IMG/VR virus record: IMGVR_UViG_3300035670_000008 | Span: 62,001-126,000 of that record | Strand: one strand, 5' to 3' | DNA length: 64,000 nt | Shown here: piece after piece, positions 10,315-56,174 of the stretch | Layout: each line of letters opens with the position of its first letter | Numbering within the stretch: position 1 is the first letter of the stretch | Made by a program: the position numbers and the translations under genes | The notes under the pieces: generated by a model | What the model was told of the DNA's origin: nothing | Databases searched by the model: none | Seen by the model: only the letters and a program-made list of their open reading frames with translations

Positions 10315-10320
10315 AGCACT

Positions 10321-10800: not shown

Positions 10801-10855
10801 AGACTCTTGGGTGGCCGTCGCACGCGGCTTTCACCCGACAATAAAACTTAAAATA

Positions 10856-38438: not shown

Positions 38439-38581
38439 TGGCTCGTTCCTCCTATTTATTAATTCTTCCTTCCTTCTGCTCTTTTCCCCGTGTTATCTGG
38501 CTTATTAGCTTTTTTGTAGCCAACCTACCATACTCCGGGGGCTGTCCGCAAGTAGTAAAAAAGGGGCATAGCCCCAGTGGA

Positions 38582-39466: not shown

Positions 39467-39516
39467 CTAAGTATCGAGCTGTCGGTAGTAAAAAGGGGGT
39501 TTATCCCCCGACCACG

Positions 39517-40021: not shown

Positions 40022-40170
40022 AATAAACCTGCCTTATATTTCAAATTTCCACTCCATCCGCTCTTTTGCACCTAGCACCGAACTAAGCCAGTAGCAAAAA
40101 TAAAACCAGCTGTGCCCGAGAAAAAAGTCTGGTCTAGATAGCCTCGGGGGAGACTATCTAGACCTAGAGC

Positions 40171-40869
40171 TTAGAAGATGGAACCGTATTTAACGGCGGA
40201 ATCCATCATGGCGCTGGTGACCGTGGCATAATTGCCAGAGCCGACGAGCTTTAACCCACGGTACGCAAGGGCGACCATTTCGAGAACATCCATGGGGACT
40301 TTGACAAATTCCCCGTTGGACTTCAACCAAGTCTTGCCGCTCGGGTCATTCTGGTCTTTTACCTTGCAGGGGACTCCTTTCTTGAGTGCTAGCAAGAACA
40401 CTACCCGGGAGCCTGCGGGTACGTTCTCGGTATCCAACCATACCGATGGGGTTTTAACCATCCATTCACGAAGGCGGGTGCCCTCGACGATATTGCGAGC
40501 TTGCCCCGCTTCAGCAGCGGAGTAGAACGTAACTAGCCCATTGAGCTGGAAGTTCCAAGAGCCTTGACCCTTGACGATAGGCTGGAGAGCACCACCGATG
40601 GTCGAGCCACTCAGACCGCACCGAAGTGCTAACTTGTCTGGGTTGCCGCTGGCGTCGGTTTTGGTGTACTTGACGACCGGGTCGCCAAAGAAGCCGATGC
40701 GCACCATACGGAGAAGAGACTCCTCGATGATAATGGTTCCATCCTCATTGCCAATCTGGCGCCGGAGTTCGGCTGGCCAATTGGCAGTCAATGCAGTCAA
40801 CGTCTCGACATGGTCTTGGGCGTTGCTAGCGTTGATATAGATGGAAGCGACTTTGGTAGAATTCGACAT
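40171..40869 (-). CDS. Hypothetical protein
   Basis: GAGGA RBS; class II motif upstream. Confidence 0.8.
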   Translation of the reverse strand: MSNSTKVASIYINASNAQDHVETLTALTANWPAELRRQIGNEDGTIIIEESLLRMVRIGFFGDPVVKYTKTDASGNPDKLALRCGLSGSTIGGALQPIVKGQGSWNFQLNGLVTFYSAAEAGQARNIVEGTRLREWMVKTPSVWLDTENVPAGSRVVFLLALKKGVPCKVKDQNDPSGKTWLKSNGEFVKVPMDVLEMVALAYRGLKLVGSGNYATVTSAMMDSAVKYGSIF

Positions 40870-41065: not shown

Positions 41066-44000
41066 CTATTTGCGGTTGGCTTTCAGCCACGCGAAGTAGT
41101 CGTGGTCTACGAAGCCTTGGCACCCGGTCAGCCAGTTAATTACCCGAGGGTCAGAGCAATCTAAGAAGACGTCCTCGATGCGCTCGAAACGAGACAGCAT
41201 CACATAGAGGGCGGCTACTCGCTGTAACGCCTGCTCTTCGCCTAAGCGGTCTTCGCTAATCGAAATGATGCCAGGGCCTTTAATGGTTAACCCTTGGCAG
41301 CTATTAATCGTAGTCGCGAAATCTGCGTGGAGGGGTAGCTGGATGAACTTACCGCTCAGCGTGCCATCGGAAAAGTGCTTGCCCTCGAACTCATGGCTTT
41401 CAATACGAACGAGCCGATGTCCGAAGTCAACGATGACGTGGTCGTTGCCTAGTGACTTAATCTTGCCCCGACTACCATTAGCGGCCAGCAAGGTCTTGTT
41501 ACCACTTACAAGCTCGTATTTATTGTTACGTAGCTTGACAGGCATGTCAATGGCCAACGTCAAATTGGCAGGGATGGGTCGGAAGTCCCGGAGCCAATTA
41601 TCGTTGGTAGCGCCTTTCCGAATGACTAGACCGTTGTAGGTCTTCTTGGTGGTGACCATCGCCTGGGTATAACGCTCGTTCACTTCAATAACGCGACGGT
41701 TATTGTAGAAGATATGAACAGCGTTCTCAGGCGGGGTGACTACGCCGTTGATGCAGTCAGCAAAACGCTGTGCAATAACCCCAGTAATCATCCCAGTCTC
41801 ACGTAGGATGTCCAGGGCTTCCTGGTAAGCAGGGTCACCTTTCTGACGCACGCCGGTGTTTAGCTCAACGATGCTGAACGGACGGGTGGTTCCGTTGAAA
41901 CCATTGATTAGGCTGCCTTGGTTAGCTTTACAGCCGTTGATGAAGACATCTTGGTAGAACTTCACGGCTTTGTTATCGCTAACCGGCAGCTGACCACCGT
42001 CACCTACGAGCAGGATTTGGGCGAGTGGGTTCAGGCGTTTGATAATGTTGAAGACAACAAACAACACCCGTCCATCCACCATGGATACCTCGTCGATAAC
42101 TACGCGCAAGCGCTGACCGGTCTTGCAGGTCAAGCTTTGCTTAACGTAGTTATTCGTCAGAGACTTCATCACCATCGACTGAGCCCACTGCCAATCGGTG
42201 GTGCCAGGGGTGCGCTTCTCGCTGAAGTCAATACCCAAACCGAAACCACTGTTAAGCGTTCCTAGCGCACCGTAAGCGCCTTCCTGTAGGCTACCGCCGA
42301 GGTTCATCACGGAGATACCCGTAGAACCAAAGACGACGACCTTGTCACCAGCGGCTGCCCAACGGTGGATGGTTTCGGCAGTGATGAAGGTCTTGCCGGT
42401 ACCAGCCTTACCGGTCAAGAAGATGTTGTCACCCTGCTCCACCAGGGCTAAGAACTTTTTTTGACAGCTGGTTAGGTTGTCGATTTCGGCTAGCTCGATA
42501 GGTAAACCGCAGGTGGGTTCAGCGGCAGGAGCTTCGGAGATAGTAGGGATAGAAGGGAGAGTTTGCATAGTAGCCTCAGGGTTAGGAGTTTCTATGCTAT
42601 CTGCTTTTTTCCCTGCTTTCTCTTTACTTTCTTGTAGGTCAGTAATAACCGTTGTGTCAGCTACGCGAGCAATGTTTGCTTTGGAGCCTTTGGAGTGCCC
42701 GTCCCAAATGACGATACTCTTATGGCAACCATCGTGCATGACAGCATCACGTTGCGTATAGCTACCATTTACGCAGATAGTAGGGTAGCCTACGTTATTA
42801 CGACAACGATTTGCGTAGTAAACGGTTACTTCGCAGCCACGTCCTAGCAGATACTGCTGTACAGCAAGGTCAATACCTGTAGCATCACCAACTCGGAATG
42901 TAGCACCGGCTTGGATGTAAGCATCGATCTCTACCTTTGCTTTATCAGGTAGTTCTTTGATCGAACGGCTGCCGGAGACAACTACAACCGCACGCTTTGG
43001 CTCAACTGCTCCATCTATTTCCATTAGTTCGCCAAATATCCAGCAGTCTTTCTCTTCAGACCAATCGTAGAAAAGCTTGGTTACTTCGCCAGTGCTAGCT
43101 AGATAAAGCCAAGAAGCTTCAAACAAATTTACGATGTGCTGGCTGGGGCGGTAGCTAGGTAGTGAGTAATTAACTGCATAGACTACATCCCGAATGGCGT
43201 TCAAGAAGTCGCAGGCCTGTACGTTGTACAACCAAGGATGTTCTATGAAGGCACCTTTAGCTCCATGCTCAATGACGAAGCAGTAAGTGTCAGGGAACAG
43301 GTCGAAGTCTCCAGACCACGGCTGGCTCTGTTTACCGTCATACCAATCCTTGGCTTCTTGTAGTGCCTCGTTGAAACTATCAACAGCCCCTGTATTGCTG
43401 ATATCTGGGTAGCCGTAAAAGTAATCTACTAACCCAGTTTCCCAAAGGTAGACTAGATAATCTTCCTTAGTTAGGCTACATTCGCGGCTGGAGTTGCCAT
43501 AGGAGAATACCAATGTGTTAGCGAAGATATTATCCAGCTCGTCCATTGAGATAATGCCGTTGTGTAGCAGGTCGCCCATGGTACGTTTACCTTCAACGAA
43601 ACTATTAATATACAGCTCGTCGATATAAGGTTTGATACTTTCAACAAAAGCATCAGCAACCTTAATCCGGTTGGCGGTGGGCTTAACCTCTGTAGCTACC
43701 ACATCAATGGTAGCCCCGGAGGGCTCTACAGAAGCAGGGGCCTCTGTAGATTCAGCGGTGGGTTCGGCGTCTACAACGGCAGCGAAGCCGCCATCAGACG
43801 GAGGAGTTGGCTCCTTGGGAGTAGCAGGTACAGACCCACTACCAGAGTCGTCAGAGCCTTCGTCTTCAGGCTTCTCGTCGTTAGATGCCGAACCGTTCGT
43901 CGGCTCAACTCCCAACTGTACAGCCAGAGCAGCTAGCACACGCTCGGCAGCAGCGTCGCCAAACTCAGCCCGCACTTCATCAACGATGGAGCGGACTTTC

Positions 44001-47000
44001 TGTTGGCGAGCGGTGCGTTCGGCTTTAGCGCGCTCTTCTGCTTTAACTTGCTCAGCGATGGCAACCAGCATAGCTACCGTGGCGTCACTCTCAGCGGCGG
44101 CTTCGAGGACATCGACGATAGGCACAGCAGTTACTTCTGCTTCCTCAGCGACCTGGGTAACCACAGGCGTAGGAGCCACGATGGGTGCAGGTGCAGGTGC
44201 AGGTGCAGGTGCAGGTGCAACGGGAGCTGGGGCGGTAGGAGCTGGGTCGATGACCTGCGTAGGGACAGGCGCGCTGCTAGGCTCGAACTTATCAGAAGAC
44301 AGCACTATATCAGGGTCTTCATAGTCGTCGAAGGCGGCTGAGCCTGCAAGGTCTAGCTCTTCTTCATCCCAGCGTCCATCATCCATGCCCTCGAATGGGT
44401 CTTCGTGAGTCAACCCATTGTCGATGACCAACTCGGCTGCTGGTTCATCGTTAGCGGTTGGGGCGGAGGCTTCCGCAGTATTCCAAGAGAGTGCATTGGC
44501 AATCTCCTGAGCAGTCTGGGTAGTCGGGCCGACCTCCATGATTGGTTTAATTTCCATTTCTCCTTCGACCTCTGGAGTAGAATGACGGAGCTCTAGTTTA
44601 TAGCGGAAGTAATCCATGGCGGGACGAGCTCCTGTGTCATCCATGAATTCATAACCGGTGCCAGGTAGGTATTTACATACGTCGCCCAGAACAGATTTCT
44701 GGAACATACGACGTAGTACCCATAGTACATGGGACTCGGTATAGACTTCCTCAGGGATTGTTACACCCGCAACTGGATTACCCAAGGCATACCAGTGGAA
44801 CAACTGACGAGTAACCTGTAGGTGACAGATTACTTTGTTTTCGTCCCAGTCGTTCTCGCCATTGAGGTAGCCTTTGAAGTAACCCACCCATTTGCCGCGG
44901 GTCATTTCAAACTGAGCGAAGGAATTATATTTGATAAATCCTTCTAACCCAACGCTGGCGTCAGCTTCGGTACCGTAGAGCATACCTTTCTCCCATGCTT
45001 TAACTTCGGCTAACAGGTTAAAGCACTCGGCAATCTCCATACCGGCAGTACCGTTACAGCCCATCGCTTCAACAGCCGCGATGAACTCTTCGATGCTCTT
45101 CACATCGTTGTAGCGGAACATCGTGACGTAGTTAGGGCGGGGTACTTTAACACCCAGACCTGTATCTACGAATTCAGGACGGCTGACGGCTTGGACGTAG
45201 TCTACCCACATACGCCAGGTCGGTTTGGTGTAGGCACCGAGAATGGTTTCATAAATCTCAGCTACGATAGCCACGATTTGAAACGCATTATCACTGGCGG
45301 CCCACTTGAGGGAGTCGGGAATCTCAACACCACACTTCTTGAGAGCAGTGACGATGTTGATTACACCTTCGCCGAGCTGATAGATACCGTAGGACACACC
45401 CACCATGGTGGTGAACACTTCGCGGGCGCGAATGTTGGTGTCCGCGTAGCTATCAACCTCAACCTCTTTACCTTTGATGGTGACCTTAATAGGATTGATA
45501 GCACCTTGTAAAGCACCATCTTTCGGGTCAACTTTCACGAAGGAGGAGAGGTTCTCGACGATGCGTAGGCGACTCCAGCCGTTCTTGGGCATCATGTAGT
45601 CACCCCAGTAGCATTCCTTGCGGATGAGGGTAGCCCAAGGAGATTCTCCAGGACGTTGACCCACAGCACCGGCACGGAAGGCAACAGCAGACTCAGCCGT
45701 GGTAACTAGACTGAGTAGCATTTGCAGGGTGTGCCCACATGTCCAGGGCAGGATAACGCCGTAGGTGCCGTCGCCGTCATTATCCCCAGCGGTCATCAAG
45801 TTGTGAGCCAAGGGGCTCATCAACCGGGTAGCGCCGTAGATAACGTCGAGCTGTACGACGGGCTGATTGTTCTCATCCAGCAGAGGCTTACGGTCTTTGT
45901 AGACAATGTAAGTCGGGTCGCTGGGCGCGTAGTAGAACGATTCGATAGCCTTACGGGTGTAGGGCAGAATCGTCACCAAACCAATCGAGCCGTCGGGCAT
46001 AGGCGAACGAGTCTCATGGTTGATGATGGGGGTCGGATACGCAGCTAACCCAAGACGAAGAGCAGTCTCGAACGTGGGGCAGTCCCGGTCAAGGCTATAC
46101 TTAGTCATTTCAGAGGTGAACTGACCAGTAGTAGCATCGAACACAGGGCGCTCGTAGCCACGCACGTACTGTTTCATCAAGTCGTACTGCATACCACCCT
46201 CTACTACTAAGAACATCCAGGTGGGGATGTTGGGTAGCGACAGTGCTTTACCACCAATCATCCGGTCACCACCGATATTCTTGGCGTTGCTGGAAGATTC
46301 GGTGAGGGCACGTAGTTTACCGCGCAGACGGTTGACATCGATGGCGCTCGGTAACTGACCAGCTAGGAGCGTAATCAGATACTGGTAGAAGAAGATGCCA
46401 GATGCTGTCTCTAGGCACTCCTCACCACTCTTCAACGAGTTGAGGTTGAAGAGCATAGGAGTGTAGATATCGATGTGGCGCACGATGTTGGAATCATCGT
46501 ACTCGTCTTCCCACTCATCGTAGTCACAGTCGTAGCTATCGTAGTCCCACTCATAATCCTCGTAGTCGGGAGCCTTCGTTTTGATATGGTCGAAGGTTAA
46601 CTTACGAGGAGTAGAGGTTACAACACGAATCACTACGTTCCGTAGGGCGTGGCAGACCTTACCAAACAGGGCGTCGTCGTCTGGATTGCTGAGGTCTACA
46701 TCAACTAGCAACTCACGGACGCGAGCCATACCTTCTTCATTAGGCACAGCTTCCCAAGATTTAACACCACGGCTAGTAACCTCTTGCCAGTTGGCGAGGG
46801 TGATGGTTTCTAGCAAGGTGGAGTCGTAGTCCATCGAGCCGTCGTACATGGCGCAGAGCAGCTTCGCACGGTAGGGAGATTCCAACGCGCGCACGGCTTG
46901 TCCTTCCATCACTTCACGGATAGCCTTGTTAGGCATCAAGCGATAGTTAGAACGAAGCGCAGCGCCTAGCTGATGAGAATCACCAGCGGCTTCTTCTACA

Positions 47001-50000
47001 GTGCTGCTTTCAAACAACACGACGTCGTAGATGGGGCAGTCGCAATCAGCACGACCAGCCAGCACCCAACCACGCTGCTGCATGACGGAGACGTTTCCGT
47101 CTCCGTTCAGGTGGAACCAGAAGATGTTGGCACGTTCTTCCGCGCGGCTACCTTTGTGGTTTGCAGGGTCGAGGAGGTCTACATCACTCAACACTACGGT
47201 ACGAGTGAAGACTTTGTCTCCCACGATGACCTTGCGGTCGACCACTGGGCCGATGTTGGCAGAGGTGACGTCATACATTAGCCCTTTGGGTTTGCCGTTG
47301 TCGTCCTTGGCATCCACAGCTGCTAGGTACAGTTCGAGTAGTTTGTTACCATACTCGCCGTACTCTAGGTCTGCCCAGGTCACAGTCAGCTGCTGCCCGA
47401 AGAACTCAGCAAACGCCTTCTGTAGCGCATCGTAAGCACCTGAGTTGATACCCACCGGGTCTTCAATGAGATAGTCTAAGTGGCGGCGGCCATCATACTT
47501 CTCATTTAGGTCCATACCCATCTCCCGCAGCGCCAAGAACCGGGGGTCTTGACAGTCTTTGTTGAAGACCAACGTATGGGAGATATAGGGGATATTACAG
47601 TGGGTCGTATCCATCTTCAGAACGTCCTGAGGTAACAACAGCTCAGCAACGCGCGGGCTGATGTTTGGATTATCGTTGTTGAAGATAGACTCGGCGTGCA
47701 TAGACGCGACCATACCTTTGACGACGGAGCTACGAAGCTTACCCCAGTCTTCGGCTTTGGTTACAGCCCACTCGACCACGAACTCAACTGCTTTCGTGCC
47801 AGTCTCTAGCGTGCGGGTGGTATAGGTACGCACCCACTCTAGGTAGCCAGTGAAGTCACGGGTCTGCTTGGCAGCACGAAGGTAGGGCTGATTATCCTTG
47901 AGCTTGGCACCGGTGTTGATTTGAGCCAACACATCGCCCTTGCGGACCAACTGCAGCTCGGTCGGGCGGTAGTAGGTATAGGTGATACCATACTCAACCT
48001 CTGTGGTCTTGGTGTGTTCACACCCCATGAGCACGGTGCCCATGTCAATTACCAGAGGATTTGCCCGATCGAACTTGCTGGAGCGGTAGGACATCTTCTT
48101 GGTAACGAAGCCCCGAGGACGGGAGTATTTGCTACCCAAATGCCACGCCTGACCTGCAATGCCTGTCATGGTCATACCGAGGATGACCTTCTGTAAGGTA
48201 CCTTCCAAGGGTAGGACTTGACCGACTGCCATTGAGCCACCTTTAACCTGATAGAAATCAGGCGGCATGGTACTCATAGCGATGGTGTTAGGCTCGTTGC
48301 CGTAGCCACCCTCTTTGATGAGTCGCTCCAACTCGGGCCGACCCTCGAAGTCAATCACGCAGCCGGAGGGCACAGAGGTAGGAGCTCGTAGGTCAAGACG
48401 CTTCGAGCCCTTCGCCGTCTTGGTGTTCAAGTTGGCGAACATCCAAGCGAGGTCACCACCAAAGCCGTTAGCCTCAGCAACAGCGCGAAGTTCTTCATAC
48501 CACGTGGGCGCCAGGTTTTTCAGGCGACCAAGGTCAACGTGGCAGATGTTGCCGCTACGCGCGGTGCCTTTGTTGAAGGAGAACCCCATGCTGAGCTCAC
48601 CGGTAATCCGGGTGATGAGCATCTGCATGATTTCGGAATCCTTCACCTGACCACGCAGACGGAAGGAGTGATACTCCTTGGTCAGACGGCCAGCGCCAGC
48701 ACCAGCGAAGTCTTTGAATTTGACCTTGCCGTTCTCTACTACCAAGGGCTCAGGATAGTAGACCACCATGTTGTTGTCTTTATCCCGATTCACCATCACA
48801 CCCACGATGCTATAGCTATTAGCTTCAGCATGTAGGGTGGGGCCAGACATGTTCATCGTCCCATCGCTAGTGACAGGGAAGAACTTGTCAGTTTTGGTGT
48901 GGAATGCAGCCAAGTTCGCAGACACGTTCCGTGTGGTAGCAGAGGCAACCAACTGACCGCTGAGTAGGGCGACGTAGCCGTAGTAGAACAGCCGCATGAA
49001 GCCACCGAAGGAATCACAACCCCGGATGGAGTGGATAAGCTTCTGGGACTTCTTGGTCTCAGGGTCACGGTAGTTTTCCCAAACTACTTCGATGACGCCC
49101 TTGAACATACGGTCACGGCGGCCATCAACAACACCCAGTTCAGTCATGCGAAAGTCGAGGCTCTCCTCTAGAACAATCGCATTGTTCTCCCACTTGATGA
49201 ACTGATCAGCGTAGTCCTCACCGATGTAGCTACGAATGATTCGGACCAGTGCCTCAAAATGCACGGGCTTCCATTCGTAACCGGATAAGGAACCAAGGTT
49301 GCCAGCCGGGTCTTTGCCCATACAGGCAGCCAAATACGCATGACACGCGTAGGCCGCAGGACGTAGCCCGTGATTCAACAACGTAGTACCATCTTGCAGG
49401 ACGGTGTTGTTGTTAATCCAGGTGTGGAAGTTGTCCTTGGTATAGGCCTTCCAATCTACGGCTACCAACTCGTCAGTCGTGATTTTCTGAATCGAGTTAT
49501 AGTAGGCGCGCAGTTCAGCCACGCGATCAAGGATGGCTTCTTTGGGGGTGCGGGCGTCAATTGTTACCTCAGGCTCGGTAGCCACAGGTGGGATGACTTC
49601 GATAGGCGCAGGCGCGGGAGCGGCAGGGGGTGGTGTGGTTTCCTGTTCCATAGGCACGGGTTTGCCGGGTAACAAACCACCATGCTCCTCGAAGTACTTG
49701 CAGGTGCGAGTACGTTCAAGGTCGCTCATATCCAGGCGAGGGTCGCCATGGTCCATACGCGGGCTGAATGCGTTGACCGGATACATACCTGTGTAAGGCT
49801 TCTTGTACCGGAGGATGCGCTCACCGTAGACGGTCTCAACCACGGCTTCCAGAGCGGTGGTATCAAAATGGTTGATACCCTTCTGGTCAAACACCCAATC
49901 AGCGGCCTGTAGCAGCGTGATGTTGTTGCAATACATCCGCTGAGAGGTGTGCTGTTGGTCAACACCAGGGGTAAGGTCACCGACCACAGTGTTGTCCTTA

Positions 50001-53000
50001 GCTACAGTCATGCGGCGGAGTTTGCCGCCGAAGACATAGCCAGAGTCCCCTTTGTCCCGGTATTCCCCAAAGCCATGAATAGCGTGAACCTCAGCGATAG
50101 CCACGAACCAGTAGCGTTTGCCTGCCTCTGGCATAGAGGCGATAATACCTTTGGAGTTGATGGTGTTGTAGTCACCAACTGCTTTGGCTCCATTGGTACC
50201 ATTTAGCAACAACTCCTTGAGCGTGCCACGTTGCAAAGTCGCTTCGGTGGAGGCAGCACTATCCACAAAGGAGGTACAACGTACCTTACCTTCCTCTTTG
50301 TTCAGCTGGGCATACACCAACTGAACTTGAACGTTGCGGATGTGCTGGTTACGATACCAGCCGCTGGTACCATAGAAGCCGCCAGCGCAGGTGGGAGCAC
50401 CTTTCTGGTAGCTACGAGCCGCAAAGAACAAGACGGGCTCGACCTCACCCATCATATTACCGAGGGAGCCGAAGTTCAGCTTAGCTTCTTCAGGTGCTAA
50501 GTCTGGGGCTCCCAATTTCAAGAAGGAGTTCTCGTTAGTAAACTGTTCCCGCACAGGCAGGTTCAGATTACTTTCTATTATTTCCCCGTCTGCGTTACGT
50601 CGCATACCAACGAGGTAGACAGCGTAACCCAGGGTGTACTCGTTCATACCGGCGGCAGCATTAGCCAGCTCGGCCACAAACTCGCAACCGGGGAAGCATT
50701 CGATTAAAGAGTTGAGCATATTCCCTCCTTTACTATGCTCTCCGTTTGCTTTTTTCCCCGTATTCGTGGAACACGGTGGGGAAGCAGGTGTGGTACCTGC
50801 CGCAACACCCGATTGTTCGGGAACCCCATGGCTGAAGGCCACGTAGTCGGCCACTATACCAGATTTGGTCTTGCCGAGCGTAGCTTTAGCTTCAAGCAGA
50901 TACTGCTTAAAGCCGGCGTTGATAGCCCGGTCAGCCTCCAAATCCATGGCCCAACGAGCGAAGGACTCAACTACTACCTCTTCTTCTCGTTTTTCCTGTT
51001 TGTAGCTTGCAATCCAAGCTTTAGGAATATTACGGAAGTACTTGCGGGCGAAGCCATTCCCTTTAAGGCTGAGGTAGCCATGGAAGTGGAGGTAGTGACC
51101 AAACTCATGAAAGAGAGTCTTGGTCATCTCACGGGCGTTTCCTTCACCCCGCTTCACGATATAAATCGTGTTGGGCGCGGCAAACGAACCGTTGACCTCT
51201 TCGTGGCCGGTGTAGCGGCGGGCCATGGCGTAATCCATTTCATCGTCACGGTCAGCGACGATGATATTAACGCTAAAGCTGTCTTCTAACCAGTTACGCC
51301 ACTGGTAGAAGCGTTCCATACCAGCGGGGTTGTTATCAATCTTAGCTACGTCAATCTTATGGACAGCACAAATGCCAGGCTCTTTAGTTGTGGGGGCCTC
51401 GAACTCTTTAGCCATCTTGTAGATAACAGCTTCATCTACTTGACGAATCCGTTGCTTTTGACGTGCGCAGGCGAGTTCTGGTGTTCCTTGCAGCCAATGA
51501 ACCTCCCAATGACCTTTGCCTGCTTCGGTAATACGTCGGCGCCATTTAGAGTTAGAGTTACAGCCGTCGTAAACGATTTGCATTCCTAGCTTATTAGCGG
51601 CGGCAAACTGCTCTTGGATGTAAGTCCAAACTACTTCGATATCACCCTCTACTAAATCGGTGCCATAGATTTCTTTCTTGGCTGTGTCCCAATCGATGTA
51701 GTAGTAATCTTTGAAGTTTTCTTTAGCGTAGGTAGACTTACCTAACCCAGGCAACCCAACTAACATTATGTGGGTCTTAGGTTTAATACCTTGGCATAAA
51801 ACAATAGCTTCATCATGTGCAGCTACGTTAGCTAAATGCTCAGGCAGCGCCTTGCCTTTACCAATAGTACGCACATGCCGTGCCACATAATCATTAACCC
51901 GGCCAGCCTTAGGAGACACACGCACCGGAAAAGCTTTCATTTTGAAAGCCAACCCAGCATACATCTTGTCGCACTGCATCGTGTAGCGCATCCAATTGTA
52001 TGTTGTAAACTTATCCCGGTCGGTTTCATACTTGAAGGTATGGCTTAAGCAGAATGCCCGCACACCACCAGGGGTTTCATACACCTTAAACAAGTAGTCT
52101 GGGTTGTTCTTACACCAGTCGTGTAGTAAAGCATAGGCCTGACAGCGGTGGTTAATGGTAATACACTCCTCGGTATAGTGCCCATCGTCAGGGATATCCC
52201 AATCAAGCATCATTGTGTTTGATTCCCAGAAATAAATCTGCTTCTCTAGAGACAAGTCTTCAAGACGAAGAGCCATCTCTAGTTCACCAGCAGCACCGTA
52301 CTCGCTACGGGCGGCGGTGAGTACTTCTTGGGTAGAGCTGGCGATGTATGGGAGCTCGAATCCCGTGGCGCCCAACTGCCACGCAAACAGCTCGTCCATA
52401 ACCTCAGCCGCCTGTTCGTAGGCAGCCTGGGCCAGCATCAGCTGGTGATAATCCTCCTTCCACTCTTCGAGTGGGTCATACTTGGACTCATCAAAGTCCT
52501 CCTCGTATTCGTCGTCATACTCTTTTTCTTCCTCGTCGTCATACCCGTACAGGGTATCGTCGTAGAAGGCCAGCTTGGGCTCCTGGCGTTTGATGCCACC
52601 ATAGAGGTGGTTGAGGGCGCTGTGGCCATCAGCGCGCCGGTTGTATTTACCCTCCGCGATTAAGCGGCGGTAGTGAATAGACAAAGGCAGCTCTTCCTCA
52701 GTCCGCTGGGTGCGGAACTTGCCAGCTTTGGCTACGGGTGCCTCTGCCCCGGTAGCTAACTGGAACCGGGAGTTTCCTCGCCGGGTAGCGATTGACTTCA
52801 TCGCCCGCGTAACAGGCATAACGGGCAGCTGCCGGGATTTGGGTGGGGTCACCACTTTATAAGTGGTAATTTTGACTACCTGACCACCGCGATGCGCGTA
52901 GATGCGCAACCACTCGGAGTAGCCAAGCCGGTCGGCTTTCCAGACCGATTTAATTTTGCGCTGCTTACGTGCAGCAGCGCGTTGTTGGGTTGTCAGAGGA

Positions 53001-53785
53001 CAACGAAGTTTCCGAGAAGAATGTTTCTGCCGGCGCTTACGGGCAGCGCGGGCTAATTGTTGATTGATTTTGCGGGAATTTTGCATGACAATAGCACGAA
53101 CGGTTCGTGCGATAGGTGTAACGCTTGAGCCTTGGCGGAAGCGTTTTTGATAACCATTACGACGGGCACGCCGTAGCGCTGTGGTGTTTAACCCACGCCC
53201 GCCTGTGGAGGCGTTAAACGCCGCGCGGTTCATGATTTGACGAACCCGCTTGTGAGCGGCGCGGGCGGTGGCGACGTCACCAGTGCAATCGTCGGGAGTG
53301 AAGGCAGCAACAGTCAGGGTTGGGGCAGAGGCACGGACTTGCTTAGCAAGTTGTTCCGCCCATTCCCGACGGAGCTTAATATTGGCAACCGGTTGGATAC
53401 CAGCACCGGCAGGCAAAGTATTAAACTCTACCGGCAAGGCCAGTAGAAGTTGCATTACCAACAACCCATTCCAGCGGGTAATCCGAGCTGGTGGTAGGGC
53501 CAGCTGAGGGCGAACAGCTGCGTCAATAGCAGCATTGAAGTCAGTCAGGGCCTGCTGACGACGGGCTTCAGCATCAGCTGCCACCGGAGGTAGCAGCAGT
53601 TGAGCGGTAGCGGTGGTGGTGATAACAGCGGTTGGCTCATCCCATGGTCCGAAATCACACAACGGTATATCCCATGGGTCGGCGATATGAGTTTGCAATA
53701 CACCACCCATCAGAAAGGCAACATGGGCGGGGCTGACTGCAGCGGAAATAACATTAGCAGCAACGGAAAATTGTTTGAAAGACAT
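41066..53785 (-). CDS. 4239-aa multidomain protein: P-loop kinase, zincin, putative single-chain two-barrel RNA polymerase, SLOG domain, Pif1/RecD-like helicase
   Basis: GLPGLGKS; HEFGH; GKLRSSVVKG, RSP, AGDNDGD; SGSR..GDATGID..RD..WDG.SKG; GKAGTGKT, DEVSM, GDGGQLP, RQ, SCQGLT, YVMLSR. Confidence 0.8.
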   Translation of the reverse strand: MSFKQFSVAANVISAAVSPAHVAFLMGGVLQTHIADPWDIPLCDFGPWDEPTAVITTTATAQLLLPPVAADAEARRQQALTDFNAAIDAAVRPQLALPPARITRWNGLLVMQLLLALPVEFNTLPAGAGIQPVANIKLRREWAEQLAKQVRASAPTLTVAAFTPDDCTGDVATARAAHKRVRQIMNRAAFNASTGGRGLNTTALRRARRNGYQKRFRQGSSVTPIARTVRAIVMQNSRKINQQLARAARKRRQKHSSRKLRCPLTTQQRAAARKQRKIKSVWKADRLGYSEWLRIYAHRGGQVVKITTYKVVTPPKSRQLPVMPVTRAMKSIATRRGNSRFQLATGAEAPVAKAGKFRTQRTEEELPLSIHYRRLIAEGKYNRRADGHSALNHLYGGIKRQEPKLAFYDDTLYGYDDEEEKEYDDEYEEDFDESKYDPLEEWKEDYHQLMLAQAAYEQAAEVMDELFAWQLGATGFELPYIASSTQEVLTAARSEYGAAGELEMALRLEDLSLEKQIYFWESNTMMLDWDIPDDGHYTEECITINHRCQAYALLHDWCKNNPDYLFKVYETPGGVRAFCLSHTFKYETDRDKFTTYNWMRYTMQCDKMYAGLAFKMKAFPVRVSPKAGRVNDYVARHVRTIGKGKALPEHLANVAAHDEAIVLCQGIKPKTHIMLVGLPGLGKSTYAKENFKDYYYIDWDTAKKEIYGTDLVEGDIEVVWTYIQEQFAAANKLGMQIVYDGCNSNSKWRRRITEAGKGHWEVHWLQGTPELACARQKQRIRQVDEAVIYKMAKEFEAPTTKEPGICAVHKIDVAKIDNNPAGMERFYQWRNWLEDSFSVNIIVADRDDEMDYAMARRYTGHEEVNGSFAAPNTIYIVKRGEGNAREMTKTLFHEFGHYLHFHGYLSLKGNGFARKYFRNIPKAWIASYKQEKREEEVVVESFARWAMDLEADRAINAGFKQYLLEAKATLGKTKSGIVADYVAFSHGVPEQSGVAAGTTPASPPCSTNTGKKANGEHSKGGNMLNSLIECFPGCEFVAELANAAAGMNEYTLGYAVYLVGMRRNADGEIIESNLNLPVREQFTNENSFLKLGAPDLAPEEAKLNFGSLGNMMGEVEPVLFFAARSYQKGAPTCAGGFYGTSGWYRNQHIRNVQVQLVYAQLNKEEGKVRCTSFVDSAASTEATLQRGTLKELLLNGTNGAKAVGDYNTINSKGIIASMPEAGKRYWFVAIAEVHAIHGFGEYRDKGDSGYVFGGKLRRMTVAKDNTVVGDLTPGVDQQHTSQRMYCNNITLLQAADWVFDQKGINHFDTTALEAVVETVYGERILRYKKPYTGMYPVNAFSPRMDHGDPRLDMSDLERTRTCKYFEEHGGLLPGKPVPMEQETTPPPAAPAPAPIEVIPPVATEPEVTIDARTPKEAILDRVAELRAYYNSIQKITTDELVAVDWKAYTKDNFHTWINNNTVLQDGTTLLNHGLRPAAYACHAYLAACMGKDPAGNLGSLSGYEWKPVHFEALVRIIRSYIGEDYADQFIKWENNAIVLEESLDFRMTELGVVDGRRDRMFKGVIEVVWENYRDPETKKSQKLIHSIRGCDSFGGFMRLFYYGYVALLSGQLVASATTRNVSANLAAFHTKTDKFFPVTSDGTMNMSGPTLHAEANSYSIVGVMVNRDKDNNMVVYYPEPLVVENGKVKFKDFAGAGAGRLTKEYHSFRLRGQVKDSEIMQMLITRITGELSMGFSFNKGTARSGNICHVDLGRLKNLAPTWYEELRAVAEANGFGGDLAWMFANLNTKTAKGSKRLDLRAPTSVPSGCVIDFEGRPELERLIKEGGYGNEPNTIAMSTMPPDFYQVKGGSMAVGQVLPLEGTLQKVILGMTMTGIAGQAWHLGSKYSRPRGFVTKKMSYRSSKFDRANPLVIDMGTVLMGCEHTKTTEVEYGITYTYYRPTELQLVRKGDVLAQINTGAKLKDNQPYLRAAKQTRDFTGYLEWVRTYTTRTLETGTKAVEFVVEWAVTKAEDWGKLRSSVVKGMVASMHAESIFNNDNPNISPRVAELLLPQDVLKMDTTHCNIPYISHTLVFNKDCQDPRFLALREMGMDLNEKYDGRRHLDYLIEDPVGINSGAYDALQKAFAEFFGQQLTVTWADLEYGEYGNKLLELYLAAVDAKDDNGKPKGLMYDVTSANIGPVVDRKVIVGDKVFTRTVVLSDVDLLDPANHKGSRAEERANIFWFHLNGDGNVSVMQQRGWVLAGRADCDCPIYDVVLFESSTVEEAAGDSHQLGAALRSNYRLMPNKAIREVMEGQAVRALESPYRAKLLCAMYDGSMDYDSTLLETITLANWQEVTSRGVKSWEAVPNEEGMARVRELLVDVDLSNPDDDALFGKVCHALRNVVIRVVTSTPRKLTFDHIKTKAPDYEDYEWDYDSYDCDYDEWEDEYDDSNIVRHIDIYTPMLFNLNSLKSGEECLETASGIFFYQYLITLLAGQLPSAIDVNRLRGKLRALTESSSNAKNIGGDRMIGGKALSLPNIPTWMFLVVEGGMQYDLMKQYVRGYERPVFDATTGQFTSEMTKYSLDRDCPTFETALRLGLAAYPTPIINHETRSPMPDGSIGLVTILPYTRKAIESFYYAPSDPTYIVYKDRKPLLDENNQPVVQLDVIYGATRLMSPLAHNLMTAGDNDGDGTYGVILPWTCGHTLQMLLSLVTTAESAVAFRAGAVGQRPGESPWATLIRKECYWGDYMMPKNGWSRLRIVENLSSFVKVDPKDGALQGAINPIKVTIKGKEVEVDSYADTNIRAREVFTTMVGVSYGIYQLGEGVINIVTALKKCGVEIPDSLKWAASDNAFQIVAIVAEIYETILGAYTKPTWRMWVDYVQAVSRPEFVDTGLGVKVPRPNYVTMFRYNDVKSIEEFIAAVEAMGCNGTAGMEIAECFNLLAEVKAWEKGMLYGTEADASVGLEGFIKYNSFAQFEMTRGKWVGYFKGYLNGENDWDENKVICHLQVTRQLFHWYALGNPVAGVTIPEEVYTESHVLWVLRRMFQKSVLGDVCKYLPGTGYEFMDDTGARPAMDYFRYKLELRHSTPEVEGEMEIKPIMEVGPTTQTAQEIANALSWNTAEASAPTANDEPAAELVIDNGLTHEDPFEGMDDGRWDEEELDLAGSAAFDDYEDPDIVLSSDKFEPSSAPVPTQVIDPAPTAPAPVAPAPAPAPAPAPIVAPTPVVTQVAEEAEVTAVPIVDVLEAAAESDATVAMLVAIAEQVKAEERAKAERTARQQKVRSIVDEVRAEFGDAAAERVLAALAVQLGVEPTNGSASNDEKPEDEGSDDSGSGSVPATPKEPTPPSDGGFAAVVDAEPTAESTEAPASVEPSGATIDVVATEVKPTANRIKVADAFVESIKPYIDELYINSFVEGKRTMGDLLHNGIISMDELDNIFANTLVFSYGNSSRECSLTKEDYLVYLWETGLVDYFYGYPDISNTGAVDSFNEALQEAKDWYDGKQSQPWSGDFDLFPDTYCFVIEHGAKGAFIEHPWLYNVQACDFLNAIRDVVYAVNYSLPSYRPSQHIVNLFEASWLYLASTGEVTKLFYDWSEEKDCWIFGELMEIDGAVEPKRAVVVVSGSRSIKELPDKAKVEIDAYIQAGATFRVGDATGIDLAVQQYLLGRGCEVTVYYANRCRNNVGYPTICVNGSYTQRDAVMHDGCHKSIVIWDGHSKGSKANIARVADTTVITDLQESKEKAGKKADSIETPNPEATMQTLPSIPTISEAPAAEPTCGLPIELAEIDNLTSCQKKFLALVEQGDNIFLTGKAGTGKTFITAETIHRWAAAGDKVVVFGSTGISVMNLGGSLQEGAYGALGTLNSGFGLGIDFSEKRTPGTTDWQWAQSMVMKSLTNNYVKQSLTCKTGQRLRVVIDEVSMVDGRVLFVVFNIIKRLNPLAQILLVGDGGQLPVSDNKAVKFYQDVFINGCKANQGSLINGFNGTTRPFSIVELNTGVRQKGDPAYQEALDILRETGMITGVIAQRFADCINGVVTPPENAVHIFYNNRRVIEVNERYTQAMVTTKKTYNGLVIRKGATNDNWLRDFRPIPANLTLAIDMPVKLRNNKYELVSGNKTLLAANGSRGKIKSLGNDHVIVDFGHRLVRIESHEFEGKHFSDGTLSGKFIQLPLHADFATTINSCQGLTIKGPGIISISEDRLGEEQALQRVAALYVMLSRFERIEDVFLDCSDPRVINWLTGCQGFVDHDYFAWLKANRK
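50717..50764 (-). promoter_or_regulatory. Putative internal promoter motif + RBS + in-frame ATG inside giant ORF
   Basis: AATACGGGGAAAAAAGCA identical to motifs at 14360 and 32760; AAAGGAGGGAAT-ATG (Met1023). Confidence 0.7.
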
Positions 53786-54085
53786 AGGTTTAATCTCCTA
53801 CTTGACTGAGTTTGGTTTGGATTGAAACAACGTCCATGCTTTTAAGCGGAGCTAAGGACTGAACCGATTGGATTTATTTAATGTCTTGTCCAACTCAGAC
53901 CTGCCCAAGCAAAAACCAACGCGGCTGTGCGCCTTAGCAGACATCAGGTCGGCTTGCGCCGCGCCATTGGTATCTACGTATCGGTTGTCTTGGGTAATAA
54001 AAAAACCCCAGGTATAAAACCTGGGGCGGAGCTAACAGAACCAACTCTTGTTAGGAGTGGGTCTGCTAGCTCCAAAGAAGTGAAA

Positions 54086-55036
54086 TTAGACTTGGGTTAG
54101 GTCGTAACCCGGGTCGTTGTCCACCGGGCGGTCCGGGATGTTGAATACCGTATCCCCCGAAGGGGCGGCATCCACAACACCGCCGACACCAGAAGTGGTG
54201 GTAGTAACCGTAGTGACCGGAGGAGCGGTGGGCGCCACAGGTTTAATATTCCATACCTCCGGGCGGTACCCGATTTCGACCAACACTTCCCGTATCCGCG
54301 TGAAGTCCTCGGGCTTGACATCCGTTGGAAGGTTGCAAGCCTTCTTGATAATCACCAACTTATCCACGACAGATGCGTTGATGTCCGGGTAGCGCTCCAA
54401 CACTTTCGTGCGGGCGTTCCATTCCGGGGTAGCTTGCATACCTTTGTCCTTGGTAGACTTCGTCGACTTCGTCGACTTCGTCGACTGGGTATTGGAGGAG
54501 GTATTGGAGGAGGTATTGGAGGAGGTATTGGAGGAGGTATTGGAGGAGGTGGTCTTCTTAGGTGGGGCTTGACTTGGTTCTAACACCAAGTTGAACTTAC
54601 CTTGTTGGTAAGCCTCCATAATTTCCTTAGTGGATTTACCATCCAGGAAGGTTTCCCATACTACGTCCATCTGCTCCCGCAATGCTTTGGCCTCTTTGGC
54701 CTCAGCTTCCAGCTTTTCACACTGGATGGCGAAACCCGCCGACCGCTCGATCGCGGTCTTGGTCCGCTGCTTCCACGCAACTTCATTGTCGCGTTCCTCC
54801 TTATTTACCTCTGTCAAGGTTTCCAAGTTTTTCGCTATTGCCTCCGCTGTCACTACCTTTTCAGGTGTGTTATCTGTGGCTACGGTTGGGGCCACCTTAC
54901 AATACTGCGAAGGCAAGCCCCGCTTGCAAGAAGGACAACCGCAGCCACCCACCGGAGCCGCCTTGGGAGCAGCAGGGGCAGCGGGGGCAGCTTTAGGGGC
55001 GCGAGAGATTTGAAGACCTAAGAAATTGAAAGGCAT
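54086..55036 (-). CDS. Hypothetical protein with SSNT and STK tandem repeats
   Basis: ATG at 55036 follows a leader motif shared with the 59973 gene; CGCPSC; 12-bp and 9-bp repeats at ~54455-54550. Confidence 0.75.
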   Translation of the reverse strand: MPFNFLGLQISRAPKAAPAAPAAPKAAPVGGCGCPSCKRGLPSQYCKVAPTVATDNTPEKVVTAEAIAKNLETLTEVNKEERDNEVAWKQRTKTAIERSAGFAIQCEKLEAEAKEAKALREQMDVVWETFLDGKSTKEIMEAYQQGKFNLVLEPSQAPPKKTTSSNTSSNTSSNTSSNTSSNTQSTKSTKSTKSTKDKGMQATPEWNARTKVLERYPDINASVVDKLVIIKKACNLPTDVKPEDFTRIREVLVEIGYRPEVWNIKPVAPTAPPVTTVTTTTSGVGGVVDAAPSGDTVFNIPDRPVDNDPGYDLTQV

Positions 55037-55655
55037 AGTGTATCCTGGCACTTAATGGCAGTTCCCGCCTAGTGTTAATAAACCACCTTCTTTAAACGTC
55101 TTACAGGTGGCAAAAGACGAGCATGACCTGTTATTTTGAGTCGTTGTGCTTCCCGACTACTTACGCCAGTTCAGATACAGTACTGGGAACTCTCCACAAA
55201 TGTTCTACGTGTTGTGTCTACACGTTCCTATTCATTCGATGAGCTAGGTCGACTCATCCCCTTTCATACAGCCGGGTCTGGCTTACGTTTCATCCCACAC
55301 ATGCCCGCAGCAAAGCGGTTGTCTAGGGCAATAAAAAACCCACAGAACAACTTAAAAGTATTAATATAAGCAAACCTAAGTGCGGCTGTTCGCGGCTGTT
55401 GATTCGTGTCTTATCAATCCCCACCGCGGCTGTTAGACTCTGCCTAAGCAAAATCCAACGCGGCTGTTAGCTAGGGATGACCGTAGCTCAGCCGAAGACA
55501 CAGCCACGCTGCGCTACGTCCTTTACTCTCTATCCATGGTCCTGTGGACCCCGATCTTGCGAACGGTTTTATAGATGGAGGTTAAAGAAGCGCAGCGTAA
55601 CGCGGCTATCCCTATTAAATAAAAAACCCCTCCGAAGAGGGGAAGTTTATTTATA

Positions 55656-56099
55656 TTAGAAGCCGAATTCAGCCTCAATATCGAACATAAAATCCTCTAC
55701 ATTGGATTCGATGACAGCTCCGAATTGGAGCGTGGCTGCTAGCTGGTTTAGTTTGTCTTCAGACCGAGCTTTGGCAACTCGTAATGCCTCAGCGGCAGCT
55801 TGAACAGCTGCTTTCTTTTCGATTAAAGACTCAGCTCGTAATACTTCTGCTTTTTGTAAAGCAGAGTATTCACGCGCTTGCTCATTAGTATTTGCGGTTT
55901 CTTTGGTTAGACGACCATGCAGGGCATCCAACTTTTCCTCCACTGTTAGGGTAGGAGCCGCCGCGGGAGCGGTGACTTCCTCTACCGGGGCTACCGGTAG
56001 ATTAGCAGAAGAAGAAGAAGAAGAAGAAGAAGAAGAAGAAGAAGAAGAAGAAGAAGAAGAAGAAGAAGAAACAACGTAGCCAAAGTTGAAAACTGTCAT
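55656..56099 (-). CDS. Coiled-coil protein, paralog B, with Ser21 tract
   Basis: Highly similar to 56560-56970. Confidence 0.85.
   Translation of the reverse strand: MTVFNFGYVVSSSSSSSSSSSSSSSSSSSSSANLPVAPVEEVTAPAAAPTLTVEEKLDALHGRLTKETANTNEQAREYSALQKAEVLRAESLIEKKAAVQAAAEALRVAKARSEDKLNQLAATLQFGAVIESNVEDFMFDIEAEFGF
56007..56069. repeat. (AGA)21 in-frame trinucleotide tract
   Basis: Encodes 21 Ser (TCT). Confidence 0.95.
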
Positions 56100-56174
56100 A
56101 GTAAACCCTAGTCCGGGGAAAAGAAGAACCGGCTGTCTAGGGTATAAAAATACCCTCCGAAGAGGGTATTATAG

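Follow-up and report, generated by a model that had tools for sequence, protein, structure and literature searches.

The window analysed here, a 64,000-nt stretch of the genome of an uncultured jumbo phage, probably of freshwater cyanobacteria, contains at positions 41066..53785 on the minus strand a single uninterrupted ORF that encodes a protein of 4,239 aa, with no internal stop. A copy of a conserved CCTAGACARCCG element lies ~190 nt upstream of its start (53982..53993, minus strand); seven copies of this element were found in the window against 0.66 expected, and the same element lies ~170 nt upstream of the giant gene in another of the related loci (L005). Immediately downstream there is a conserved partner gene of ~230 aa (40171..40869, minus strand), which is present in all six loci compared at 21-28% identity, but gave no Pfam or PHROG hit and has no detectable similarity to Ma-LMM01 gp063/MaMV-DC ORF64L. 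The window also carries a sigma-70 gene, whereas no recognisable structural genes were found adjacent to the giant gene. A scan of 185,579 reference genomes found no prophage copy and therefore gave no host assignment, and megablast and tblastn searches of the gene and its core against 50,697 GenBank phages found no match, as did searches with two divergent family members.

The observation made in the sequence-only reading is confirmed, since each of the motifs it listed was found where it had been placed: YETPGG at aa 569, the P-loop GLPGLGKS at 677, HEFGH at 893, GKLRSSVVKG at 2015-2024, ELLLPQD at 2048-2054, ETRSP at 2591-2595, AGDNDGD at 2666-2672 (DNDGD, nt 45770-45784), an Arg/Lys-rich tract at aa 201-280 (26 K/R in 80 residues), Pro/Ala linkers near 1383-1405 and 3161-3215, and a helicase Walker A at 3792. 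The Arg/Lys-rich tract is part of a conserved basic N-terminal region of no assigned function (aa ~150-400; 52586..53338, minus strand) shared with nine family members.

Among the N-terminal domains, only the P-loop kinase is solidly assigned (aa ~668-815; 51341..51784, minus strand). It is polynucleotide-kinase-like, given that it matches Pfam AAA_33 (E 3e-10, 41-43 bits against a cut-off of 27), phrog_505 polynucleotide kinase (5e-10) and the C. thermocellum Pnkp kinase in the PDB (4gp6, E 1e-4). The preceding domain (aa ~515-660; 51806..52243, minus strand), with conserved MMLDWD, TPGGVRAF, CDxxY and RVSPK motifs, had been proposed to be AEP-like, which rests on motif resemblance only: LDWD and CDxxY are conserved in five sequences, but the position of motif II reads GGVR, with no His. 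This domain is unique to this protein within the family, has four stand-alone homologues of 158-191 aa, none with a Pfam domain, and gave no Pfam or PDB sequence hit. The block that follows the kinase (50786..51337, minus strand) contains HEFGH at aa 893-897 and is a candidate zincin-like metallopeptidase; it is 63% identical to residues 846-1068 of the family member P0002, with which the HExxH and a Glu-rich helix about 40 aa downstream are conserved, but no Pfam or PDB hit was obtained. An AlphaFold2 model of aa 505-1040 reached a pLDDT of only 49, being below 50 in the AEP-like region and of moderate local confidence for a helix-strand-helix(HExxH)-helix arrangement, and its Foldseek matches were meaningless. 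Because HExxH occurs in only 2 of about 58 family members, we rejected a polyprotein processed by its own zincin as a property of the family, and the term polyprotein is not supported. Next to this block lies a conserved domain of no assigned function (aa ~1040-1380; 49646..50668, minus strand) shared with eight close family members.

At the C-terminal side, an acidic and Pro/Ala-rich linker region (aa ~3085-3390; 43616..44533, minus strand) is followed by a variable cargo slot (42611..43603, minus strand) consisting of an unidentified domain (aa 3395-3595) and a SLOG-like segment (aa 3595-3725), shared with the family members P0010, P0013, P0024 and P0003, whereas relatives carry NADAR or DUF4326 in the same slot. 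The SLOG assignment rests on a single PHROG hit (phrog_289, E 3e-8, labelled "GTP-binding domain", the label carried by the YpsA-like YoqJ of SPbeta). No Pfam hit was found, even in the homologue P0024, no PDB hit was obtained, a search for word-sharing homologues of the segment found none, and BLAST against SPbeta YoqJ was negative. In contrast, the C-terminal SF1B helicase (aa ~3765-4239; 41069..42493, minus strand) is solid. This Pif1/RecD/Dda-like module scores above the Pfam cut-offs for AAA_19 (47.1 bits, cut-off 25.1), AAA_30 (42.7, cut-off 27) and PIF1 (29.8, cut-off 25.9), matches the Dda-like phrog_325 (E 1e-36) and Pif1 in the PDB (2e-7), and retains Walker A, Walker B, motif V and motif VI (GKAGTGKT, VVIDEVSM, TINSCQG and LYVMLSR).

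The conserved centre of the protein (aa ~1405-3060) matches no Pfam, PHROG, NCBIfam or PDB sequence profile; scans of aa 800-3000 against Pfam, PHROG and NCBIfam, PDB sequence searches with the core alone and with two profiles (A1 and A2), and a Pfam scan of the 25 most distant members, which detected helicase families only, all failed to identify it. It defines a family of only 56 representatives among 1.84 billion proteins, almost all of which keep K-x-R-S-x3-K, then R-[AS]-P-[ML], then G-D-x-D-G-D, in that order, the last often as GDFDGD or GDYDGD and present in essentially every full-length member. K2016, R2018, K2023, R2593, P2595 and G2667-D2668-x-D2670-G2671-D2672 are invariant in the six closest relatives and at least 90% conserved across 45-57 family members that share only 16-30% identity, which is far more than chance. 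The first of these motifs (K2016-L-R2018-S-S-V-V-K2023; 47717..47740, minus strand) is the basic motif of the putative beta-like barrel; R2593-S-P2595 (46001..46009, minus strand) would be the counterpart of beta' NRxPxLH and of YonO RSPH; and G2667-D-N-D-G-D2672 (45770..45787, minus strand) is a putative Mg2+-binding triad. The N-terminal part of the module (aa ~1405-1879; 48149..49573, minus strand) is conserved in 15 or more family members and carries the K-x-x-K-x-x-K-R motif seen in the family consensus.

Structure prediction, which had been suggested beforehand as a test for two double-psi barrels, was carried out for aa 1880-3040 (44666..48148, minus strand), leaving out this N-terminal part, and gave a confident AlphaFold2 model (pLDDT 87.2, pTM 0.86). 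In the model the K2016-K2023 motif lies in a beta-hairpin, the Asp triad sits in a loop between a helix and a strand, and a continuous helix of 41 residues (aa 2777-2817; 45335..45457, minus strand) with a near-invariant Gly2796 (G917 in core numbering) is bridge-helix-like, by inference. Foldseek searches found RNA polymerase second-largest subunits from bacteria, archaea, Pol I, II and III and plastids as 46 of the top 50 PDB matches, with probabilities up to 0.97 but weak E-values (0.02-0.2, none reaching 1e-3) and local alignments with TM 0.05-0.14, and no beta'/Rpb1, QDE-1, gp66 or P23-45 chain appeared in these top 50. Of the top 50 BFVD matches, 16 were RNAPs of giant viruses, poxviruses or nudiviruses. 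The two double-psi barrels of this core and its active-site geometry are putative, and the equivalence of K2016, R2018 and K2023 to the beta-subunit lysines is inferred from motif order and from the RNAP-beta structural matches rather than from a superposition.

Profile comparison of the family with a seven-member YonO-family profile using hhalign gave E 0.012 over 112 columns, placing RAPM on RSPH and GDxDGD on DxDGD, although with a probability of only 3.7%. A sub-HMM placed the GDxDGD motif on residues 447-470 of E. coli beta', whereas the beta-block sub-HMM gave no meaningful alignment to E. coli RpoB, and hhalign against the single sequences of gp66 and YonO was uninformative. YonO of the Bacillus prophage SPbeta (PMC5467207) is also a single polypeptide, in which a basic motif (R-x-P-W-x-K-G, against K-L-R-S-S-V-V-K-G here) is followed by R-S-P-[HM] and then G-x-D-x-D-G-D, and it even has the same DNDGD. 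However, it is an 839-aa stand-alone enzyme confined to Firmicutes phages and not fused to a helicase, without detectable pairwise or HMM similarity to the present protein, and its spacing between R-S-P and the Asp triad is 43 aa against 75 aa here.

Other systems are comparable in different respects. The virion RNAP gp66 of the crAss-like phage phi14:2 (2,180 aa; bioRxiv 10.1101/2020.03.07.982082) is a giant phage protein with a cryptic two-barrel RNAP undetectable by ordinary sequence search, which prefers ssDNA templates and is virion-delivered for early genes, as proposed for the present protein, but it has DFDID rather than DxDGD and no helicase, kinase or other cargo. Gp96 of Thermus phage P23-45 (PMC10770324) is a precedent for a two-barrel RNAP fused to a large protein with another function and delivered from the virion to transcribe pre-early genes; there the partner is the tail tape measure and the polymerase is N-terminal, while here the putative polymerase is central and the C-terminal partner is an SF1B helicase. 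The coliphage N4 vRNAP, described with the polyvalent proteins (PMC5512222), is a giant injected protein (~3,500 aa) combining an RNAP with zincin-type and other enzymatic modules, with modular and variable cargo, but the N4 polymerase is T7-like, with a right-hand fold, and no helicase fusion is described there. Neurospora QDE-1 acts on ssDNA and depends on a helicase and on ssDNA-binding proteins (bioRxiv 10.1101/2020.03.07.982082), but it is eukaryotic, its helicase, QDE-3, is a separate RecQ-type protein, and its function is RNA silencing.

By far the best structural match was MaMV-DC ORF65L (E 9e-17, probability 1.00, TM 0.57 over the target), the ortholog of Ma-LMM01 gp064, a protein of cultured Fukuivirus cyanophages infecting Microcystis that is annotated as hypothetical and whose function has never been studied. 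It contains the same three motifs in the same order and is followed on the same strand by small genes, but has about 1,675 aa, no helicase and no cargo domains, shares 12% identity and gives no BLAST signal. The gp064 gene lies directly upstream of the experimentally defined early-gene cluster gp054-gp063, and is itself nearly silent at 1 h and co-expressed with replication genes (class B5). Ma-LMM01-type phages are described as having no RNA polymerase (PMC9927357), and how they run three temporal gene classes without changing host transcription is an open question (PMC5780444), on which this finding bears. The second-best viral structural match, Acinetobacter phage ME3, did not provide a transitive link to YonO, as it is not among the sequence homologues of YonO.

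Taken together, we consider it most likely, with a probability of roughly 0.55, that the centre of this protein is a highly diverged single-chain two-barrel polymerase of the superfamily of cellular RNAP beta/beta', QDE-1, YonO, crAss-like gp66 and P23-45 gp96/gp64, fused in cis to an intact 5'-3' SF1B helicase, and that it works as a phage DNA-dependent RNA polymerase that transcribes phage DNA independently of the host enzyme. In this view a beta-like barrel supplies K2016, R2018 and K2023, a beta'-like barrel supplies R2593-x-P and the triad D2668/D2670/D2672, and, since gp66 and QDE-1 prefer single-stranded templates and QDE-1 needs a separate helicase, the fused helicase, found in at least 29 of 58 family members, probably unwinds duplex DNA to feed the polymerase. 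The giant size, the basic N-terminus and the interchangeable cargo (kinase, HExxH module, SLOG-like segment; NADAR or DUF4326 in relatives), varying within fixed slots as described for injected polyvalent proteins (Iyer et al. 2017; N4-like vRNAPs are likewise fused to zincins, PMC5512222), suggest delivery with the virion to start early transcription, after which the sigma-70 factor of the phage would redirect host RNAP. Our analysis establishes the ORF, the family, the conservation of its motifs, a confident model with RNAP-beta-like structural matches and the helicase and kinase assignments, whereas catalytic activity, RNA rather than another product, the template-feeding role of the helicase and virion packaging are inferred, the last from circumstantial evidence only, including the position of gp064 next to the early-gene cluster and its near silence at 1 h; no virion proteome exists even for the Ma-LMM01 group. 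Against this reading stand the weak E-values of the PDB matches, the low hhalign probability, the lack of adjacent recognisable structural genes, the co-expression of gp064 with replication genes and the sigma-70-like promoters found in front of the Ma-LMM01 early genes. The interpretation given in the sequence-only reading is thus partly supported: the single-chain polymerase core in beta-then-beta' order, the kinase and the helicase are backed by the evidence, while the polyprotein, zincin, SLOG and AEP-like proposals are unsupported or unverified, the accessory domains are variable cargo rather than part of a conserved machine, and the statement that no cyanophage example was known needs revision in view of the Microcystis phages.

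Other explanations cannot be excluded, although we regard them as less likely. The same polymerase-helicase could be made after infection, without being packaged, to transcribe middle or late genes, as YonO does in SPbeta and gp64 in P23-45; the middle-class (B5) expression of gp064, these two precedents for non-virion enzymes, the absence of a recognisable structural module around the giant gene and the CCTAGACARCCG element upstream of it, which suggests regulated expression, speak for this possibility. On the other hand, the giant size, the basic N-terminus and the swappable counter-defence-type cargo fit injected polyvalent proteins better, the phage already encodes a sigma factor for redirecting host RNAP, and middle or late synthesis is also what a packaged protein requires; we find this alternative doubtful.

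It is also possible, but unlikely, that the protein is a replicative helicase-primase, in which the two-barrel polymerase would make RNA primers on the single strand exposed by the 5'-3' helicase, analogous to T7 gp4 or AEP-helicase fusions, with the kinase and the DxD/TPGGVR domain assisting in the processing of nucleic-acid ends; if so, it would be a third, previously unknown class of helicase-primase alongside the DnaG-type and AEP-type enzymes, used to start replication of a jumbo phage genome. The polymerase-then-helicase order mirrors primase-helicase fusions, two-barrel enzymes initiate de novo on ssDNA, gp064 is co-expressed with replication genes, and no DnaG or AEP primase and no DnaB-type helicase was recognised in the 64-kb window, although this is only part of a 217-kb genome and a conventional primase may lie elsewhere. 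However, Ma-LMM01 has a separate primase (gp134) and separate helicases, half of the family, including gp064, lacks the helicase, and a module of about 1,650 aa is oversized for a primase. Least likely is a structural or ejection protein that retains a relic barrel fold and an acidic metal-binding loop, with the helicase as a DNA-translocation motor, as could be supposed from the weak structural matches, the lack of recognition by any sequence profile and the fact that giant phage proteins are often structural; the near-invariance of exactly the catalytic-type residues of both putative barrels across members only 16-20% identical argues for catalysis, and no tape-measure-like or fibre-like repeat composition was observed.

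Single-chain two-barrel RNA polymerases are rare, the experimentally characterised ones cited here being YonO, crAss-like gp66, P23-45 gp96/gp64 and QDE-1, and they are central to ideas about how RNA polymerases and RNA-silencing enzymes arose. The present family would add to them one so diverged that no sequence profile recognises it, with polymerase and helicase in one chain, an architecture that we did not find described in the literature examined and that would solve in cis the ssDNA-template requirement that QDE-1 meets with a separate helicase. Met1023 (50717..50719, minus strand) is preceded by AAGGAGG-N5 and by a copy of the 5'-leader motif found before neighbouring genes, and could be an internal start or a relic of gene fusion.

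Window 41066-53785 on the minus strand is a single uninterrupted ORF of 4,239 codons, and the observation made by the sequence-only reading was confirmed, since every motif that it had listed was recovered in place: GKLRSSVVKG at aa 2015-2024, ELLLPQD at aa 2048-2054, ETRSP at aa 2591-2595, AGDNDGD at aa 2666-2672 (DNDGD at nt 45770-45784), the P-loop at aa 677, HEFGH at aa 893, YETPGG at aa 569, the Arg/Lys-rich tract at aa 201-280, the Pro/Ala linkers and the helicase Walker A at aa 3792. Its interpretation, a giant polyprotein built around a divergent single-chain two-barrel RNA polymerase with fused kinase, protease, SLOG and helicase, was supported only in part, as detailed below.

The window is 100% identical to part of IMG/VR contig UViG_3300035670_000008, which is 216,563 bp and therefore jumbo-phage sized. 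Its other genes are phage-like, and among these there are a family-A polymerase exonuclease fragment, RecA, integrase, ThyA, TnpB, tail-fibre and Ig-rich proteins, a sigma-70 factor and PIN-PhoH. The polymerase-exonuclease has phage relatives only among freshwater cyanophages of Microcystis, Pseudanabaena and Microcoleus, at about 27% identity. The sigma factor (22900-23907, minus strand) is a full sigma-70 family protein with regions 1.2, 2, 3 and 4, and its top-ranked listed phage hit is the group-2 sigma of Synechococcus phage S-CBS3, at 33% identity. A cyanophage origin is therefore plausible but not proven, and a scan of reference genomes revealed no prophage copy.

Two domains of the giant protein exceed curated thresholds. 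A P-loop kinase at aa ~668-815 scores 41 bits with Pfam AAA_33, against a cut-off of 27, and also hits the PHROG polynucleotide kinase family and the C. thermocellum Pnkp kinase domain, the latter at E 1e-4. At the C-terminus, aa ~3765-4239 form an SF1B helicase, for which AAA_19, AAA_30 and PIF1 are all above their cut-offs, the PHROG Dda-like helicase family hits at E 1e-36 and Pif1 structures at 2e-7, with Walker A, Walker B and motifs V and VI intact.

In contrast, residues ~800-3000 gave no hit in Pfam, PHROGs, NCBIfam or PDB sequences, even when family profiles were used, nor in 50,697 GenBank phages. A word-indexed search of 5.8 billion proteins identified five relatives of 3,402-4,346 aa, all ending in the same helicase, and an exhaustive HMMER profile search of 1.84 billion representatives identified only 56 proteins at E <= 1e-3, of which 28 were at E <= 1e-30. 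Although identity across this family falls to 16-20%, three short motifs are conserved in at least 90% of sequences and always occur in the same order: K-x-R-[SN]-x(2-3)-K (here K2016, R2018 and K2023), [NS]-R-[AS]-P-[ML] (here R2593 and P2595) and G-D-x-D-G-D (here aa 2667-2672, and often GDFDGD or GDYDGD in other members). This is the grammar of two-barrel RNA polymerases, in which basic residues from the beta-type barrel are followed by the NRxPxLH and NADFDGD elements of the beta'-type barrel. A YonO-family alignment that we built from seven Firmicutes-phage sequences has the same invariants, namely R-x-P-W-x-K-G, then R-S-P-H, then G-x-D-x-D-G-D. Profile-profile comparison of the two families aligned 112 columns at E 0.012, placing RAPM on RSPH and GDxDGD on DxDGD; the register is right, but the HH probability is only 3.7%, and we take this result as supporting evidence and not as proof. 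Likewise, a sub-profile landed on E. coli beta' residues 447-470 and on the DNDGD of YonO, at non-significant scores.

AlphaFold2 modeling of aa 1880-3040 with a 45-sequence family alignment gave a confident model, with mean pLDDT 87.2, pTM 0.86 and 712 residues at pLDDT 90 or above. A Foldseek search of PDB with this model returned no match at E <= 1e-3 and no beta'/Rpb1, QDE-1 or gp66 chain among the top 50; however, 46 of the top 50 matches are the second-largest RNAP subunit, with probabilities up to 0.97, including bacterial and cyanobacterial beta, plastid beta, archaeal Rpo2, and subunit 2 of Pol I, II and III. These are local alignments of 140-530 columns inside a 1,161-residue query, which is why the TM-scores are low. 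Against predicted viral structures, 16 of the top 50 matches are giant-virus, poxvirus or nudivirus RNAPs. In the model, the K-x-R...K motif lies in a beta-hairpin, R-S-P lies between two strands, and the Asp loop lies between a short helix and a strand, as in beta'. About 105 residues later there is a 41-residue unbroken helix carrying a near-invariant glycine, which we infer to be bridge-helix-like. Between the two putative barrels there is a Tyr/Asp/Glu-rich acidic insert (aa 2406-2431; window 46493-46570, minus strand) that is disordered in the model (pLDDT below 50), and a similar acidic tract occurs at aa 405-440; these may be nucleic-acid mimics or autoinhibitory elements.

By far the best structural match is part 2 of an uncharacterised protein of the cultured phage MaMV-DC, at E 9e-17, probability 1.00, TM 0.57 over the target and 12% identity. 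We identify this protein as ORF65L, of 1,677 aa (838 + 839 when split in two), which carries K-L-R-x4-K at 933, Q-R-T-P-M near 1305 and G-D-A-D-G-D at 1351. The family HMMs align the latter two motifs in register at about 18 bits, whereas BLAST detected no similarity. The second-best viral match is an uncharacterised 798-aa protein of Acinetobacter phage vB_AbaM_ME3 (BFVD entry A0A172Q0S6; E 3e-3, probability 0.96), which is not a sequence homologue of YonO and so may be another cryptic two-barrel polymerase in a jumbo phage.

The 98%-identical ortholog of ORF65L is Ma-LMM01 gp064. In the published transcriptome of Ma-LMM01 the early genes are defined as a single 5.8-kb cluster, gp054-gp063 (PMC5780444), which begins immediately downstream of gp064 on the same strand, after a 6.7-copy array of 42-bp tandem repeats that separates the polymerase-like gene from gp063, the first gene of the experimentally defined cluster (array and polymerase-like gene at 5272-5552 and 5812-10833 of NC_008562); this array is an obvious place to look for an unusual promoter. 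gp064 itself is a class-B5 middle gene and is almost silent at 1 h, at log2 1.6 against 7.9 for gp063. The authors assumed host sigma-70 transcription throughout and left open how the temporal classes are achieved, and a later paper states that this phage group lacks any RNA polymerase and that virion mass spectrometry is still needed (PMC9927357). So, if gp064 transcribes the early cluster, it must arrive in the virion; otherwise it acts later.

Across the family, the constant parts are the polymerase module and, in at least 29 of 58 members, the C-terminal helicase, while the closer subfamily also shares a basic N-terminal region and a domain of unknown function at aa 1040-1380 (domain X). 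The rest is variable cargo in two slots. The N-terminal slot (aa ~420-1022) holds here the kinase, an HExxH block shared only with the family member P0002, and a domain with conserved MMLDWD, TPGGVRAF, CDxxY and RVSPK motifs (51806-52243, minus strand). The latter also exists as four stand-alone proteins of 158-191 aa in other metagenomes (P0059-P0062) with no Pfam label or family assignment, and looks like an uncharacterised small enzyme family. The pre-helicase slot holds an unknown domain plus a SLOG-like segment here, NADAR in P0002, DUF4326 in the family member P0003 and both kinds in another, P0024 (window 42611-43603, minus strand; 11221-11796 in L005 and 18344-19555 in L003, two loci of related phages; P0024 residues 632-1134). 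SLOG, NADAR and DUF4326 have been linked to NAD+/ADP-ribose conflict systems of jumbo phages (PMC7824862), and this swap of NAD+/ADP-ribose-linked modules is suggestive of counter-defence cargo. Modular cargo with zincin hubs is the hallmark of injected polyvalent proteins, among which N4-type vRNAPs are counted (PMC5512222).

However, the three cargo assignments proposed by the sequence-only reading are individually weak. The SLOG assignment rests on one PHROG hit at E 3e-8, the zincin assignment on the motif and on conservation with one relative, and the AEP-like idea on a DxD...GG pattern in which the expected His is an Arg, while the structure prediction meant to test the zincin and AEP-like assignments reached a pLDDT of only 49. 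The term polyprotein is therefore not supported as a family property.

Our best reading, with a probability of about 0.55, is that of a phage two-barrel DNA-dependent RNA polymerase whose fused 5'-3' helicase would open duplex DNA to supply the single-stranded template. Its characterised relatives prefer such templates, given that gp66 transcribes ssDNA and denatured DNA but hardly any dsDNA, and QDE-1 needs RPA and the QDE-3 helicase. In this view, the enzyme is probably delivered with the virion together with counter-defence cargo, and the phage sigma factor would then take over host RNAP later. The ORF, the kinase and helicase assignments, the family with its conserved motifs and the RNAP-like structural matches of the model come directly from the analysis, whereas the psi-loop topology and active-site geometry, polymerase activity, the template-feeding role of the helicase and delivery with the virion are inferred, in the absence of any functional data.

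Alternatively, the same enzyme could be made after infection and serve middle or late genes, which we consider possible but unlikely. A new kind of helicase-primase is somewhat less likely still; the domain order and the co-expression of gp064 with replication genes favour it, but a separate primase in Ma-LMM01 and the helicase-less family members disfavour it. An inactive structural relic is the least probable alternative, being disfavoured by conservation of exactly the catalytic-type residues. Phage single-chain two-barrel RNAPs and giant virion RNAP fusions are already known (YonO, gp66, P23-45 gp96 and, by analogy, N4). What is new here is a deeply diverged family and its architecture, the fusion of the predicted polymerase to an SF1B helicase, although the statistical strength of the structural and profile links is modest; no description of this fusion or of any cyanophage YonO-like enzyme was found in the literature that could be searched.

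A gene of ~220-233 aa and unknown function immediately follows the giant gene in all six loci (window 40171-40869, minus strand; and, in the loci of related phages, L001 22570-23238, L005 13403-14065, L003 21267-21962, L006 14707-15408 and L004 20414-21115), at 21-28% identity, with 13 invariant residues and no Pfam or PHROG hit, and it could encode a cofactor or specificity subunit. In Ma-LMM01 and MaMV-DC a 219-aa gene sits at the same position but shows no detectable similarity. Upstream of the giant gene, Amidoligase_2-like genes are found in two related phages (window 57189-58508, minus strand; L003 3786-4676 and 5810-6832), which may indicate a conserved neighbourhood.

The element CCTAGACARCCG, which follows an intrinsic-terminator-like hairpin and T-run, occurs 7 times in the window (allowing 1 mismatch) against 0.66 expected, always in the direction of the genes, with minus-strand copies at 53982-53993, 55316-55327, 56130-56141, 57002-57013 and 59013-59024, and further copies at L001 7684 and 8414 and at L005 467-478. 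It lies ~170-190 nt upstream of the giant gene's start in two phages, and is a candidate phage-specific promoter or regulatory site. In addition, a conserved 5' leader (ACGGGGAAAAGAGCGGAAGGAG-like, including the Shine-Dalgarno sequence) precedes several small minus-strand genes downstream of the giant gene (34966-34987, 37111-37132, 38470-38491, 39447-39468 and 40052-40073), and a degenerate copy (50740-50761) plus AAGGAGG-N5-ATG lies inside the giant ORF at Met1023, exactly where the variable N-terminal cargo ends, which may be an internal start or the scar of a gene fusion.

Elsewhere in the window, a tyrosine integrase gene (5251-6393, minus strand) sits next to a tRNA-Ala(TGC) gene (6485-6558, plus strand), and a TnpB/OrfB_IS605 gene (10895-12103, minus strand) lies inside the phage contig. 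Two paralogous small ORFs (55656-56099 and 56560-56970, minus strand) share a 296-nt repeat at 73% identity, and there are also a long AGA trinucleotide run (55995-56081) and a 12-nt tandem repeat (GGTATTGGAGGA, 4 perfect copies; 54476-54550) inside ORF 54086-55051.
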